64,000 nt of DNA from Botryllus schlosseri (GCA_051294905.1 CM119386.1:4216001-4280000), one strand, 5' to 3'; shown: positions 33,423-64,000, numbered from the stretch's first letter. Notes: a model not told the origin generated them from the letters alone. A program made the numbers and translations.

Positions 33423-33529
33423 GCCGTGAATATGTGATGCAGTTGCAAGAGGTTTTTTTATAAACGGTGTGTATTTCATAATGACCATCATAATGGCTAT
33501 TTTGTCGCTTTAGATTGTCGCATGAGATT

Positions 33530-33652
33530 TTGCTCCGAGTCACGAGGCAATCCACATTTCTGAAGCGCCGAGTCAAGTCAAGGCATTTTTGCAAAGTGAC
33601 TCGAGTCAAGTCAAGTCATACATAAAAGCTGACTCGAGTCATCCCAACACTG
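33530..33652 (+). mobile_element. Right end of GACTCGAGTC-family hAT element
   Basis: GACTCGAGTCAAGTCAAGTC arrays ending GACTCGAGTCATCCCAACACTG, as at 63600-63753. Confidence 0.8.
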
Positions 33653-34069
33653 TTAGTGATATGGTATATTTGTGTCACCCTTATGCTCATGTGCTTGAAA
33701 ACTGAGCACTGAGCAGCGTATTTACGACATTGATGCTGGATATTGCGAAGCAGGCTTCCCAGTGGCCGAAGTGATAAATCTATTTTCTGGTCACACGTCA
33801 CGTTTTTTTTTACTTTTACGGGTTTTCACGGGCCACTTAACGTGACCTGGCATGCCACATTTGACCCGCACATTTCACATTTCTGTTACATAGTACTGTC
33901 AGAAGAGTAGGCTATTATAGCATTCTTAAACTCAGATATTCCAGACGAGTGTTCAGAACAAGTCACCAATTCGGAGTCACCAACACGTTGGGAAATGATA
34001 CGACAGCACATACATGACGGCACGGCGCATATATAGTGCTGCTGGCGCGTGCCGGTATACGGTATTTTG

Positions 34070-45010: not shown

Positions 45011-45184
45011 CAGTGTTGGGATCAAGTCACTCCTTCGAGTCACGAGTCATCTCGAGTCACAGCATATTTTGACCCGAGTCAAGTTAAGTCACTCGTTTTT
45101 TGGAGGTGACTCGAGTCAAGTCAAGTCAAGTCACGAGTCAAATCACAATTCAAGTCAAATTGAATTTTCGAAGAATGAGTGATG
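45011..45184 (+). mobile_element. Left end of GACTCGAGTC-family hAT element
   Basis: CAGTGTTGGGATCAAGTCACT plus GAGTCAAGTC arrays, as at 62850; interrupted by the MITE at 45185. Confidence 0.8.
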
Positions 45185-47114: not shown

Positions 47115-47290
47115 TCGCCCGACTCGCCCGATTATTGGAAATTACATGCCGGTGACGTCATATTTTGTTATACGATTGTTAATATACAATGTTCTTTCTA
47201 ATTCTCTACTAATTGCTGACGATTACCCCTGACGAGTGTCAGCCGAAAATATTCGGACTCATTTCAATATGAATATACCACTCAATTATG
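47115..47290 (+). mobile_element. Penelope-like 3'-end (pLTR) fragment
   Basis: Aligns with the reverse complement of 62383-62500 (CATATTTTG..ACGATTGTT.ATATAC.ATG..AATTCTCTACTA.TTGCTGACG). Confidence 0.75.
47215..47258 (+). ncRNA. Minimal type I hammerhead ribozyme (family 1)
   Basis: GCTGAC-GATT-ACCC-CTGACGA-G-TGTCAGC-C-GAA-AATATT-C-GGAC: intact core, stem I reduced to 2 bp. Confidence 0.7.
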
Positions 47291-50404: not shown

Positions 50405-51055
50405 CAGCTGTCCCAGCAGGGTGCCAATAATCTACCCACGCACCCCTACACCCAACCTCGTTTCCCCCCACCTTAATCTTATTGACGAAGTAGTCTGCGA
50501 AGCACATGCTTTGAGCGATCGCCAAGTGTAGCGGGCGTGCTAGCGCTTCAGTCGCAGAATCAAATATAGGCAAGTAGATTATTTACCTATGTTATTTCTA
50601 TATTTGTTAATATATTGCAGTATGATTTGATCTTGGTAAGTCTACAAGTTTCTGACCACTACTACTACTACTATTTGGCTGTTGTGTGCTATTATAGACA
50701 GCTCCTTGGATCTGCGTGTGTGATCAGGAATGCAAGAGAACTAGAACGGTCATTAGTCAGTCGGCTAGTGCGTACAACAGAAACTATTGAATAGTATATT
50801 CATATTGAAATAGACCCGAATATTTTTGGCTGACACTCGTCAGGGGTAATCGTCAGCAACTAGTAGAGAATTGGAAAGAGCTGATGACATTTACCCCTCA
50901 CGAGTGTCGGCCGAAAATATTCGAGTTAATTTCAATATGAATATACTATTCTAATGTAAACTGAAGTTGAGTAACTCCAAGAAGCTCTACAACAGGAACT
51001 GTAGCATCGACTCCAATCGAGCATTATACCAGCGTGTCTTGCATCGACCGCTACA
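50405..51055 (+). repeat. Unclassified interspersed repeat, copy 2, interrupted by a Penelope pLTR
   Basis: Colinear with 15028-15499 apart from the 50786-50987 insert. Confidence 0.85.
50786..50987. mobile_element. Head-to-head Penelope pLTR pair with two mutated hammerheads
   Basis: Minus-strand HHR at 50814-50857 (G12A, perfect ACCC/GGGT stem I) and plus-strand HHR at 50883-50926 (G5C); 13-bp TSD TACAACAGAAACT / TACAACAGGAACT, where the empty site at about 15407 reads TACAACAGGAGCT. Confidence 0.82.
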
Positions 51056-59053: not shown

Positions 59054-59338
59054 GTTACAGAAAAAAGATATATAGCTATTAATATCACCCTATTTGGCTG
59101 CACCCACAATAAGCACTGACCAACAGATAACGTAATTTGCTTTTCAATTCTTGTCCACGTGGTGGGGCGTGAAAGTGCCAGTGTTCTGAATACTATCAGT
59201 AACCGCTAACCACATGAAATGGAGATTTTGTATAGCTTCCGAACTATCAACAAATGGCCGGGACGCGTTCAACTTGGTCGTGTAGGCGCAAGTTATATCA
59301 GAAACCCCAGCCCAGCAGTGGTTTGCGATCATATATAG

Positions 59339-60302
59339 CAGTGTGGGGATAACTCGAGTCATGACTTGACTCGAGTCAGACTCGAGTCACCTTTTTCGCA
59401 TGACTTGACTTTACTCGAGTCACTTTGTGAAAATGACTTGACTTGACTCGGCGCATCAGAAATATGGATTGACTCGTGACTCGAAGCAAAATTCACCAGT
59501 CAATTTCAAGTCATCAAGCAATCGCTGTCGATAAAAATCACTGTATCTTGCAATCGAATTGTTCGCGACACGTTGGTGTAACCCGTGGGAACTACCAATT
59601 ATTCAATGATCGGGCGTTTTACTGAGCCTCCATTGTTCTCTCACAAATAAATTGAACGCTTACGAAGTGATCGAAGCTTACAGCTTACGCTGTCGTAAAC
59701 TAGTATTATATAGTAAAGTATTATAATAGAAAAATGTCTATTACTGTTCTCGGTTCCTGAACCAAACCTCTTGTTTTATTGAAATTAAATTCGAAGAGAG
59801 TTTATATAGTCCTCAACCATTGGCGCAGGCTCGAATTGTATCATATCCATTTGTAAATGGGTAATGTATTGCATCTTATCAATTCGTTTATCTATTCTCT
59901 ATTTTGGCTGGTAACTATGAACTGAGGCTATGCAATTATACTTGCGTAGTTTAGCATTTCTACGTATATGTAAGAGATACAGCGCCGTCTTACGTGTATA
60001 TTTAACTTCATATTCGTTCATCGGTTCAAAATCAATGACCAGTCAATCTGTGTTTCGGACAGCTAGCAAAATGCAATGGCGTAGGCATGCCTCATACTTC
60101 GAAAAGGCAACTTGACTTGAAATGTGACTTGACTCGTGACTTGACTTGACTTGACTTGACTCGAGTCACTTCCAAAAATCGAGTGACTTGACTTGACTCG
60201 AGTTACCTTCGAAAATCGATTGACTTGACTTGACTCGAGTCAAAATGTGCAATGACTCGAAATGACTCGTGACTCGAAGGTAGAGACTTGATCCGAACAC
60301 TG
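59339..60302 (-). mobile_element. GACTCGAGTC-family non-autonomous hAT element (complete, inverted)
   Basis: Ends CAGTGTGGGGAT / ATCCGAACACTG; perfect TSD ATATATAG; reverse complement of 62850-63753 along its length. Confidence 0.92.
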
Positions 60303-60707
60303 ATATATAGTCCCTAGTCCTATCATACCGCTGATTTTAACCACATATAGAAAATATAGCTATACATTGTACATGAATCTATTCTTACGAAAATCTTCAT
60401 ACTGCCAGAGCCCTCAGAAAATTTGTTCACTACCAAATATTACCATGATAATACCACGTTTCATATGTGTATAATCTATTCGATATGATGACCTATTGCA
60501 GTTGAATGGTGTACAGATGGAGTCGGTGATATCATATTTAAATCATCAAAATCAATTCAGTAAATACTATACATATATTTTACAATATCATATGCTTAAA
60601 CCACAGACTCTATCAACAAAATTTAAGGGAAGTATATATACAAGCATTTATTAGCATGGGAATCGTACAATAACACAAAATACTATGTAGGCCTATATTT
60701 AGTTCAA

Positions 60708-62382
60708 CTAGTTGCTCTGATTGAATCCAACATTGCCGTTGCTATTTTGTATAATGATATTGGTATTGTTGGTACTGTTCCCAGCACTCATACGTGCACC
60801 GTAACATTCGGGGTATGTTTCTTCATGAGGTATGTGAGGGATGCAAATAGTCGTGTGGTCCGTACGGAAAATCATATATTGGAAACCTTGCCCGATTAGG
60901 CCCGGTGCCTGCAGTTCCGGTGTAGCCATCTTCATATTGGCAGGGCCGGACTTCGCGCTTGGAGGTGCCACAAAAGTAGCGCGACCATTTGAATTTAACA
61001 GTGGGTTGTCACGTTTACGATTGGTCTCATCACCTCTTTGTTTAACAACGTCGTCATTCAGCAGGTCGGAGAATTCCTTTATCTTGCGGTCACTTTGCTC
61101 TTGTTCGTGGGTGAGAAATACGACATCCACCTCAGATGAGCTGTCATCGAACCGAATGGTACACTCATTTTCACAACAGTGTGTGATGATCCACTGTGTC
61201 ATATTCTTCAGACATTCAATTACTCTTTCGGATCTTGCCACAGGAGAATTTATCCTAAGACATACTGTTGGAGGAGATCCAGTGGAAACTGAAAACACAT
61301 CGACTCTGGAATTCTGGTCTGCATTGCAGCTCTCAGCATTCGTGATCGCCACGGAATTTTCCGTTTCTTCTACTATTCGTTGCAAAAGCCCAAAGTCAAC
61401 GTTCCGAGGAACATCATAATCGATTTTCTCGACAGGCGCTACGTATTTCGTATTTATGCGAACTGTGCGTCCATCGTCATACTCTATCACGGCGTGTCTA
61501 CAGTCGGTGAATCCCAACAGAGTGGCTTCTTGACTAATTGCGTGACGTGTTGATGGCTTGGTTTTTATTCTCGATAAGATTTCATCGACATATCGCGGAG
61601 GACCGGATGCAATCCGGACACGACAGTCTGCTCGCAACGACGTTTTTTGAAGTTCGTTGGATCGAAATCTCTTTGCCTGCGAGCGCGAGACGTTCTGTAT
61701 CATAGATGGGTTCAATATCAATTTTTTCCCGTTGTTGAATCTGACGACGACATCGAGATCCTTATCTATTCCTTCAACTTTTCCAGGCAATTTTATAAAA
61801 TCCAAGCACGACTCCAACAGGTTTGCAGCGACCAGCTGCGTTCTGATACTGGCAGTTACTGTCAATCGCCCTACGTCACCTGCAGAAAATGGCAGGGGTT
61901 CCGGCGGGCAAAATTCATCTGGATCCATGTGATTGTAATCCAGAAATGCGCTTTGAAAGTTTATTCTCCATGTTCGTCCAAATTTCGGCGCAACTATGAG
62001 TGACCCATCTTTTTTGATTTGACAAATCCTCACGGCTTTTCCCGCAATGCTAGTCATTTTCCAGTTCCAGCCCCCAACTTCTTTTTGGTACTCGATGAGT
62101 TTTGGCAGATTGGAAATAATTTTTACCTCCACACCGACTTCAAAACCCTTCGGATGATTCGTGATATTCTCTTTCGACATCGGTTCTGGGTCACTTACTT
62201 CTATAAGTAGTGCTGGATGCACAACAACGCTTGACACGCAATTGAATGTTACATGCACTCCTGCGCTCGTTATGGCAATCACTCTTCCTTGAACACCTGT
62301 ATATTTCTGTGGAATGTCAGGTAGCCTTTTTTGGAACTTTTTCAAAAGCGTCTTGCTCTTCTTGGTTTTCACAAAATCTCCA
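60708..62382 (-). CDS. Protein (or terminal exon) with four Mind-bomb-type SH3 repeats and an N/Q/G-rich C-terminal tail
   Basis: Open 554-codon frame. Repeats GDFVKT...GVQGRVIAI...VHPALL, FEVGVEVKI...YQKEVGGWNWKM...GRTWRIN, FSAGDVGRL...PGKVEGIDKDLDVVVRF...LNPSMI and LRADCRVRI...VIEYDDGRTVRINTKYV fit the MIB repeat pattern F-x-x-G-D-x-V...Q-x-x-x-G-G-W...G-x-V...D-V-x-V...N-P. AATAAA lies 55 nt after the stop (60647-60652). No in-frame ATG before residue 65, so an upstream exon is likely. Confidence 0.85.
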
Positions 62383-62625
62383 CTGACACTCGTAAGGGGT
62401 AATCGTCAGCAACTAGTAGAGAATTCAACAAAAGAGCATCGTATATCAACAATCGTGTTCGTGTATCCCAAAATATGTCGTCATCAGCATGAAATTTCGA
62501 ATACGAGAGCGTTCGATATACTATTTTAGATGGTACACGAAGTCTCTTTGTTGACAGAACCTGGGCTGGCGTATTTTGATAAAACTCGAGTCCAAGACAC
62601 ACTAATGAATGAAAGTGTGAACGGC
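62383..62625 (-). mobile_element. Penelope-like 3' fragment: GIY-YIG C-terminus, 3' region and truncated family-1 hammerhead
   Basis: Minus strand SGRSHFH../VLDSSFIKIRQPRFCQQRDFVYHLK* (compare GRTLFHSKVLESTLIKLEQPILCRQKDRLYSLR at 37.5 kb), then GCTGACGATTACCCCTTACGAGTGTCAG cut off at 62383. Confidence 0.82.
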
Positions 62626-62849
62626 CACTCCCAACGACACGATATCCGTCCTTTAACGACCAGATGCATATAGTAAGCCCCCAGAAGTTGCATCGATTAC
62701 CCTACGGTGGGCCAAAAATCAATGTTTATTTGTGCGGAAGGGGGCTGAAAAATGTGGCTTCGGACCTGGTTACAACACTCATCCGCATACTCCTGAACCG
62801 GATCGTGACCACCTCTATAGTCGATAGACAAAGCTTGACTGGTGTGACG

Positions 62850-63753
62850 CAGTGCTGGGATCAAGTCACTACCTTCGAGTCACAAATCAATTCGAGTCAT
62901 TGCACATTTTGACTCGAGTCAAGTCAAGTCACTCAATTTTTGGGGTGACTCGAGTCAAGTCAAGTCAAGTCACGAGTCAAGTCACATTTCAAGTCAAGTT
63001 GCCTTTTCGAATGCCTACGCCATTGCATTTTGCTAGCTGTCTGAAATACAGATTAACTGGTCATTGATTTTGAACGGATGAACGAATATGAAGTTAAATA
63101 TACACGTAAGACGGCGCTGTATCGCTTACTACGTAGAAATGCTAAACTACGCAAATATAATGGCATAGCCTCAGTTTATAGTTACTAGCCAATATAGAGA
63201 ATAGAGAAACGAATTGATAAAATACAATACATTATTCATTTACAAATGGATATGATACAATTCGAGCCTGCGCCAATGGTCGAGGACTATATAAACTATC
63301 TTCGAATTTAATTTCAATAAAGAGGTTTGGTTCAGGTACAGAGAACAGTAATAGACATTTTTCTCTTAAAATACTTTACTATACTAGTTTACGACAGCGT
63401 AAGCTGTAAGCTTCGATCACTTCGTCAGCGGTCAATTTAGTTGTGAGAGAACAATAGAGGCTCAGTAAAACGCACGATCATTGAATGATTGGTCGCTCTC
63501 ACGGGTTACACCAGCGTTTCGCGAACACTCCGATTGCAAGATACAGTGATTTTTATCGACACCAATTACTTGATGACTTGAAATTGACTCGTGAATTTTG
63601 CTCCGAGTCACGAGTCAATCCACATTTCTGATACGCCGAGTCAAGTCAAGTCGAGCCATTTTAGCAAAGTGACTCGAGTCAAGTCAAGTCATACGAAAAA
63701 GGTGATTCGAGTCTGACTCGAGTCAAGTCATGACTCGAGTCATCCCAACACTG
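62850..63753 (+). mobile_element. GACTCGAGTC-family non-autonomous hAT element (complete)
   Basis: TIRs CAGTGCTGGGAT / ATCCCAACACTG; flanks GTGTGACG and ATATATAT do not match, so no TSD. Confidence 0.9.
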
Positions 63754-63823
63754 ATATATATATATATCATTGGGATAGTCCGATGACATTCCCCGACATC
63801 ATCGGCTACCTATTATTATAAGG

Positions 63824-63922
63824 CCCTGTGGATATAAAGCTGTATCAGCTGTATCACCCTGTGGATATAAAGCTGTATCAGCTGTACCACCCTGTGGATA
63901 TAACGCTGTATCAGCTGTATCA
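63824..63922. repeat. 33-bp tandem repeat, 3 copies plus decayed tail
   Basis: Unit CCCTGTGGATATAAAGCTGTATCAGCTGTATCA at 63824, 63857 and 63890. Confidence 0.9.
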
Positions 63923-64000
63923 CAGCTCTATCAGCTGTAGCACTCTATCTGTATGGAATCGGTGTCTTGTGTCCCAAGACTCAAGTTTTTTTTGCGGAGC

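Follow-up and report, generated by a model that had tools for sequence, protein, structure and literature searches.

The stretch of the Botryllus schlosseri genome analysed here (GCA_051294905.1, CM119386.1:4216001-4280000; 64,000 nucleotides, nt, hereafter the window) carries on its minus strand a long open frame encoding Mind bomb (Mib)-type SH3 repeats, and we read this locus as an N-terminally truncated, probably non-functional copy of a RING-less, intronless family of Mib-repeat proteins restricted to ascidians. To this reading, taken jointly with the scaffold mechanism that we propose for the family, we assign a probability of roughly 0.62. Truncation and decay are seen in the loss of ~190 residues, in a repeat fragment at the homology boundary, in the lack of an early ATG, in the inverted-repeat setting of the frame and in the near absence of RNA sequencing (RNA-seq) reads. 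Full-length members of the family are laid out as an N-terminal region of ~100 residues, five repeats of the SH3_15 type, a nucleotidyltransferase (NTase) fold of ~100 residues and a C-terminal extension of ~130 residues, most of it modelled with low confidence, which holds an aromatic hairpin and, at its end, an Asn/Ile-rich segment of ~20 residues, both of them short, conserved and beta-prone. Where the initial annotation saw an adaptor gene, we find a truncated copy on which hardly any RNA-seq reads fall.

The minus-strand open reading frame (ORF) at 60708-62372 starts with GTG and encodes 554 residues, with a C-terminus identical to the tail quoted in the initial annotation. It is by far the longest ORF of the window, where the G+C content is ~40%, ORFs are sparse, as in animal genomes, and the next longest has 245 residues. 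Upstream of 62372 the frame remains open for just 11 codons, and the first ATG is found only at codon 65 of the 554-residue numbering, which is used throughout (Table 1).

A search for homologues, which had been proposed as a check, uncovered both paralogues in the same genome and relatives in other ascidians. The closest database relative is P0001, a protein of 742 residues, whose residues 199-742 align with the window protein at 48% identity. Within the window's own genome (495 Mb, 219 contigs) the family comprises 10 loci, three of which, the window copy included, are decayed. Seven paralogues (L002-L005 and L007-L009) are intact, with intronless and uninterrupted frames of 738-821 codons that give 719-765 residues from ATG to stop, and the nearest same-genome paralogues are ~49% identical to the window protein. 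The other two copies, L006/L023 (C7:9.74 Mb) and L010/L024 (C11:6.97 Mb), have interrupted frames, with a TAG in one and both a TGA and a TAA in the other; L010 sits 9 kb from the intact paralogue L007. Full-length members measure 719-770 residues, and each of them is longer than the window protein by ~190 N-terminal residues, among which lies a fifth repeat. Homology of the window sequence to the paralogues ends at 62384, inside the first strand of repeat A, and tblastn searches with the N-termini of the paralogues came up empty both within the window and over the 8 kb past its end, a span that extends ~9.6 kb upstream from the frame. A maximum-likelihood tree pairs the window copy with the full-length P0001 as its sister (support 94/92), with L002 and L003 as the next pair. 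Since the sister protein is full-length and both branches are of similar length, the lineage would once have been full-length as well, and its truncation is probably not ancient.

The presence of four diverged Mib-type SH3 repeats, as stated in the initial annotation, is confirmed at several levels. The window protein matches Pfam SH3_15 (PF18346) at E 1.4e-12, with 48.2 bits where 24 are required, and MIB1 is also recovered with it in a sequence search of the PDB. An AlphaFold2 model of the protein, built on a family alignment of 27 sequences, is confident over residues 1-425 (predicted local distance difference test, pLDDT, mostly 80-95), and Foldseek retrieves as its best solved structure the Mib-repeat domain of MIB1 (4tse, E 6.5e-8), followed by tandem arrays of SH3-like, KOW and Tudor domains. 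When the repeat units, taken as slices of the family alignment, were compared profile against profile with hhalign, those at residues 1-62, 70-142, 158-230 and 243-315 came out as mutually related, most pairs at a probability of 89-97%, with repeat D pairing only with B and C; the fifth, N-terminal unit, seen only in the relatives, matches A, B and C. The SH3_15 profile is found in all the aligned family members (9/9). The companion claim, that the ankyrin and RING domains of Mind bomb ligases are missing, holds equally well: in the window protein and its relatives Pfam detects SH3_15 alone, with no Mib/Herc2, ZZ, ankyrin or RING domain, and genuine Ank/RING proteins did show Ank and RING domains in the same search. 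The ascidian family thus resembles the REP domain of MIB1 in its tandem SH3-like Mib repeats, but it has five of them (four in the window copy) instead of two and lacks the Mib/Herc2-ZZ (MZM) module, the ankyrin repeats and the RING fingers, so that no E3 ligase activity is expected. Elsewhere in the genome, outside the studied family, the locus L011 (G000:C13:8000777-8004292) has a frame, open past the edge of the locus, with five SH3_15 repeats that are canonical and match strongly (E 4e-52).

A profile search over 1.84 billion representative sequences returned 19 clear members of the family (E up to 1e-51), below which many unrelated SH3_15 proteins appear. The named ones among the clear members are "uncharacterized proteins" of Styela clava, the others come from run assemblies, and a distant member (E 1.7e-9) was obtained from Clavelina lepadiformis; as far as named sequences go, the family appears to be restricted to ascidians. 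The combination of Mib repeats, an NTase-like domain and the tail did not turn up in the literature searched, nor in the family and structure libraries, and a literature search on Mind bomb, ascidians and innate immunity yielded only a review on Notch.

The ~230 residues that follow the repeats, which had been described as unrelated, in fact hold a ~100-residue NTase-like fold, a disordered linker and a conserved aromatic hairpin. Residues 324-424 are modelled with a pLDDT >90 as a helix, a beta-hairpin, a second helix and three strands. Foldseek searches with this middle domain retrieve NF90/NF45 at the top, followed by Pol beta, OAS1 and TUT4/7, from the PDB (E 0.006-0.02), and NTP-transferase, poly(A) polymerase (PAP) palm, ILF2 and RelA/SpoT clusters from the AlphaFold database. 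A VIA-align comparison against 48,161 chains gives almost exclusively NTases in its top 34 rows (Z 8.6-6.0, root-mean-square deviation ~2.7-3.5 Å over 85-105 residues), among them Pol mu/beta, CD-NTases, PAP, terminal uridylyltransferases (TUTases), OAS and cGLR, and the ESM Atlas structure search adds the CCA-adding enzyme, PolX, PAP and AbiEii. The four structure libraries therefore concur in suggesting an NTase fold, with middling scores and uniform match lists. At the sequence level, neither the window protein nor its relatives match any NTase family of Pfam. An AKAP7/2H phosphoesterase domain was considered for residues 380-447 and rejected, as the Pfam match (E 0.01, 16.2 bits) lies below the cut-off of 24.4 and four fold searches pointed to an NTase.

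Active NTases of the Pol-beta superfamily carry an hG[GS] x9-13 [DE]h[DE]h motif and a third carboxylate. In the sequence-based alignment of the family, the G[GS] and the acidic motifs are not conserved: a G-S occurs only in the subfamily of the window copy, 5 residues before the strand L-R-I-N, with no conserved acidic pair, and this second strand, L-R-I-N in the window copy, reads D-L-R-V in other subfamilies. The middle domain is for this reason read as a putatively non-catalytic NTase-like module. Its core fold matches that of the NF45/NF90 DZF domains, Pol beta/mu, CD-NTases, OAS/cGAS-like proteins and TUTases, but it consists of the ~100-residue core only and the catalytic motifs of the active enzymes are not conserved. 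Further downstream, the aromatic hairpin follows the family pattern [FY]-x-[FY]-h-x-[LF] ... [VI]-[YC]-h-P-x-[YI]-h, in which P512 is invariant, and residues 516-540, between the hairpin and the tail, have a pLDDT <50. A feature search of the ESM Atlas with the C-terminal 240 residues gave no usable match.

By analogy with characterized relatives of these domains, a scaffold can be proposed for the full-length family. The REP domain of MIB1 binds Notch ligands through a short peptide of theirs, the C-box (PMC11887331), and the repeat array of the ascidian proteins could likewise bind short linear peptides. The degenerate NTase fold would act as a non-catalytic pairing or ligand-binding module, as it does in the DZF domains of NF45/NF90, and the tail may serve as a family-specific docking or self-association peptide held on a flexible tether. 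The multi-copy, birth-and-death mode of evolution of the family, with 3/10 loci decayed, would suit a role in immunity or conflict; an immune or cell-death role is pure inference.

The transcriptome data fit a decayed copy. RNA-seq was taken from three bulk runs (X4, X6 and X8; 6-13% of each sampled), and in all of them the read depth is 0 across nearly the whole frame. Several points weigh against our reading. The RNA sampling was thin and of bulk reads only. A long neutral decay agrees poorly with the branch lengths of the tree (0.58 for the window copy vs 0.52 for P0001) and with a stop-free frame of 565 codons; the alternatives are a recent truncation and continued use of the shortened product. 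In another run, X1, a contig of 325 nt (record 7) is 96% identical to the frame over 62117-62382, leaves the window sequence exactly at 62382 and continues with 59 further nt that are unlike the window; its source may be an allele or copy whose 5' part differs and is perhaps intact, and an intact allele or copy may accordingly exist. On the structural side, a VIA-align Z of 8.6 is no more than middling for a fold assignment, and the scaffold mechanism, with its putative partners, contacts and expression, is extrapolated from the domain families.

Some of these points would suit a working short gene. Its translation could begin at codon 65 and give a protein of three repeats followed by the NTase-like domain and the tail, or else a splice at the CAG of position 62383 could join it to a distant upstream exon. 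Besides the intact frame and a branch not markedly longer than that of P0001, the residues conserved in the family are kept in the window copy, an AATAAA lies past the stop codon, and the CAG falls exactly at the homology boundary. However, the other members are all intronless, no N-terminal exon was detected anywhere in the window or, upstream of the frame, over ~9.6 kb, almost no RNA-seq reads lie on the frame, and the sequence directly upstream is derived from repeats. We consider a functional short gene unlikely, and favour a truncated copy that is probably non-functional.

The surroundings of the frame are rich in repeats. A 43-nt fragment of a transcribed, high-copy repeat adjoins the family homology boundary: hundreds of RNA reads match just 62383-62425 and continue into unlike sequence on both sides, with a depth of ~2-32 per strand in the three runs and with nearly all reads showing C, not A, at 62394. 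Further copies of this piece lie at 50832-50872 and 47133-47240 of the window. A hammerhead or any other Rfam family was also considered for the 5' boundary and dismissed, with no match at the gathering score in the whole window, nor at E <=1 in 62000-64000. On a larger scale, the frame is contained in an inner segment of 2.5 kb (60303-62849), bracketed by two inverted arms of ~0.95 kb each, which align over 977 bases at 87% identity (91-97% within blocks) and show a very high read depth, a structure that resembles a foldback or long terminal-inverted-repeat element. Smaller pieces of the arm family are present at 33508-33655 and 45011-45172, and a tandem array at 63824-63943 is made of units of 33-34 nt (CCCTGTGGATATAAAGCTGTATCAGCTGTATCAC), in three near-identical copies and a diverged fourth one. 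The repeat at 62650-62849, upstream of the window frame, also adjoins both broken copies of the family.

This setting raises the alternative that the frame is a gene fragment captured by a foldback or long-inverted-repeat mobile element, as opposed to a resident gene that decayed in place. The inner segment lies exactly between arms of a high-copy, subrepeat-rich family, the copy is 5'-truncated, and contigs of run X1 join 60299 to 62849, near the inner ends of the arms, omitting the inner segment, although these joints depend on stretches of 20-26 nt within subrepeats and could be repeat artefacts. A close parent is nevertheless missing: the nearest paralogues have ~49% protein identity, against 87% between the two arms, which makes a recent capture unlikely. 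Altogether capture seems improbable to us. The idea that a mobile element encodes the family as a whole was discarded, as the full-length paralogue loci have no flanking arms, with just a 155-nt fragment near L009.

[quoted passage not shown] The tail is conserved among homologues, across ascidian orders. In the last 20 residues of 22 members Asn makes up 18% and Ile 12.7%, vs 4.6% and 5% in the preceding 100 residues. Between subfamilies, the best local scores of the tails sum to 532 vs 441 +/- 15 in composition-preserving shuffles, a value reached by 0/300 of them, and a gap-free alignment of the window tail with that of Clavelina has 9/19 identical residues, the sum of the top five scores of the Clavelina tail being reached by 8/1000 shuffles. 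The similarity across subfamilies and the Clavelina alignment therefore mark the tail as a real, fast-evolving family motif, made up of a pair of short hydrophobic/Asn stretches on either side of a Gly or polar turn, with N-x-x-N as a frequent ending. In the AlphaFold2 model the tail has a pLDDT <50 and forms two short strands; together with its flanks (residues 426-488 and 516-540) it is a low-confidence region, as in a RHIM flanked by disorder.

A RHIM is defined by a core tetrad (V/I)-Q-(V/I/L/C)-G within a segment of 18-20 residues, and the insect-type cRHIM by a VxxG core (PMC13506858). A regular-expression search for [VI]-Q-[VILC]-G found this tetrad in 0/22 tails of the family; two Styela proteins have a VQLG elsewhere in their sequences. 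VxxG is likewise absent from the window tail, and among the windows of the last 40 residues it occurs in 3/22 (VGEG, VSTG and VIRG), in no case within the terminal Asn/Ile motif. Of 18 tails compared with the Pfam RHIM profile (PF12721), none matched at E <=10, with the proviso that HMMER filters drop weak matches, and a profile of the tails against the PDB matched no RIPK chain. Tunicates have also been reported to appear devoid of RHIMs (Kajava et al. 2014; PMC4262963). A four-copy complex prediction of the last 60 residues, run without controls, scored 0.00 and carries no weight either way. The RHIM reading is thus not upheld, with no tetrad, no Pfam or RIPK match and no likeness beyond shuffles to the NLR-associated tag described below, and the tail is not recognisable as a RHIM at the sequence level.

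There are similarities of a more general kind. The family tail and the RHIM of RIPK1, RIPK3, ZBP1 and TRIF are both Asn-rich, beta-prone segments of ~20 residues next to low-confidence sequence, and an 'NST' precedes the hydrophobic/Asn stretch of the family tail, as it does in RIPK1. They differ in the tetrad [VI]-Q-[VILC]-G, which the family tails lack, and no partner protein with the same motif was found in the searches, of limited power, described below.

The same genome contains a further Asn-rich motif, in this case associated with NLR genes. In L038, L041 and L037, and at seven further sites, a small frame that precedes a NACHT exon by ~400 nt encodes a G/N/H-rich tag with the core N-N-S-T-x-H-[IV]-G-N-N-N-[DN]-N-Y. 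Its ten copies, recovered with one query, comprise L038:2714-2818 (minus strand) and frames in L057-L065, with the core NNSTNH[IV]GNNN[DN]NY.AD, and several of them neighbour NACHT genes on contig C1. Among 224 first-look candidates (PF05729), at least 94 NACHT exons exceed the Pfam cut-off, many of them clustered on C1, C10 and C16, which indicates a large NLR expansion. The NLR tag and the Mib-family tail are both short and Asn-rich, share the 'NST' element and occur in an ascidian genome without canonical RHIM proteins; the tag core, however, is absent from the tails. Local alignments of the Mib-family tails with the tag give p 0.86 vs shuffled tails, and a hidden Markov model of the tag scores the tails at <=5 bits, the same as shuffles. 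A search of the genome with the tag matched no family tail, a search with the 35-residue tail returned only itself, with the little search power of a short motif, and the C-terminal module was found in no other architecture of the genome outside the 10 family loci. No tail-like peptide was detected within 1.1 kb upstream of 30 NACHT exons, a small sample. With the tag, tail, module and NACHT searches all empty, and within their limited power, a motif shared between partners, which is the hallmark of amyloid signalling, was not found, and from its sequence the Mib-family tail appears to fall outside the NLR-tag group.

These results bear on the proposal that the tail is a RHIM-type or analogous amyloid motif, through which the protein polymerises as an adaptor in innate immunity or cell death. 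Such a motif would agree with the size and the Asn/Ile/Gly-rich composition of the tail, its two modelled strands after low-confidence sequence, its conservation across ascidian orders, the I-N-h-x-G that several relatives have where the RHIM reads I-Q-h-G, the birth-and-death evolution of this multi-copy family and the RHIM-like tag on NLR genes of the same genome. The missing tetrad (0/22 tails), the empty Pfam RHIM and PDB RIPK comparisons, the lack of likeness to the NLR tag beyond composition (p 0.86), the failure to find a tail-like peptide near NACHT exons or the C-terminal module in another architecture, and the reported absence of RHIMs in tunicates (PMC4262963) all speak against it, and we regard an amyloid adaptor as quite improbable. 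Several members do show an I-N-h-x-G core followed by V-x-F/I-N, and the motif is conserved from Clavelina to Styela-like ascidians; the terminal motif could then be a lineage-specific RHIM analogue, homotypic and possibly amyloid-forming, which would couple a peptide-sensing Mib-repeat array and the pseudo-nucleotidyltransferase to downstream partners in chordates that reportedly have no RHIMs, an idea that we hold to be very unlikely.

Table 1. Positions of the features discussed, counted from the first letter of the window; residue (aa) numbers are those of the 554-residue protein.
Feature	Position	Strand	Basis
Left inverted-repeat arm, rich in GACTTGACTCGAGTCA-type subrepeats, high-copy in reads	59331..60302		Self-comparison, read depth
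AATAAA hexamer, ~55 nt past the stop; consensus match only	60647..60652	minus	Sequence
Open frame, 565 codons + stop	60708..62405	minus	ORF listing, sequence
Stop codon of the frame	60708-60710	minus	Sequence
Asn/Ile-rich C-terminal tail (aa 533-554), earlier called RHIM-like	60711..60776	minus	ORF, regular expression, shuffle tests; pLDDT <50
Aromatic beta-hairpin motif, conserved (aa 497-515)	60828..60884	minus	Alignments; pLDDT 73-79 in domain model
Linker, low-confidence, poorly conserved (aa 426-488)	60909..61097	minus	pLDDT 32-42, alignment
Nucleotidyltransferase (Pol-beta-like) fold domain (aa 324-424), without conserved hG[GS]...[DE]x[DE]	61101..61403	minus	pLDDT >90, structure searches, family alignment
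Repeat D, Mib/SH3_15-type (aa 243-315), most diverged; related to B and C	61428..61646	minus	hhalign; pLDDT 80-92
Repeat C, Mib/SH3_15 (aa 158-230); matches MIB1 4tse residues 41-78	61683..61901	minus	PDB sequence search, hhalign
Repeat B, Mib/SH3_15 (aa 70-142); best Pfam stretch aa 77-138	61947..62165	minus	Pfam, PDB sequence search, hhalign
Repeat A, Mib/SH3_15-type; paralogue homology starts at ~62384 ('GDFV'); second repeat of full-length relatives	62187..62384	minus	tblastn, hhalign, model strands
Fragment of high-copy transcribed repeat (43 nt), adjoining the family homology boundary	62383..62425		Read depth, loose ends at 62383 and 62425
Right inverted-repeat arm	62850..63761		Self-comparison

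The locus of the window, truncated and embedded in repeats, should not be annotated as an intact adaptor gene. What appears to be new here is the family to which it belongs, a RING-less association of Mib repeats, an NTase-like domain and a conserved tail, for which public names, found in two ascidians, go no further than "uncharacterized protein". If the family is functional, it would use the peptide-binding module of Mind bomb without its ubiquitin-ligase part, joined to a degenerate NTase fold and a tethered tail. Ascidians are the closest invertebrate relatives of vertebrates and are reportedly without RHIM proteins, yet short Asn-rich motifs abound on the immune-type genes of this genome, and for that reason it is useful to sort related from unrelated motifs of this kind.

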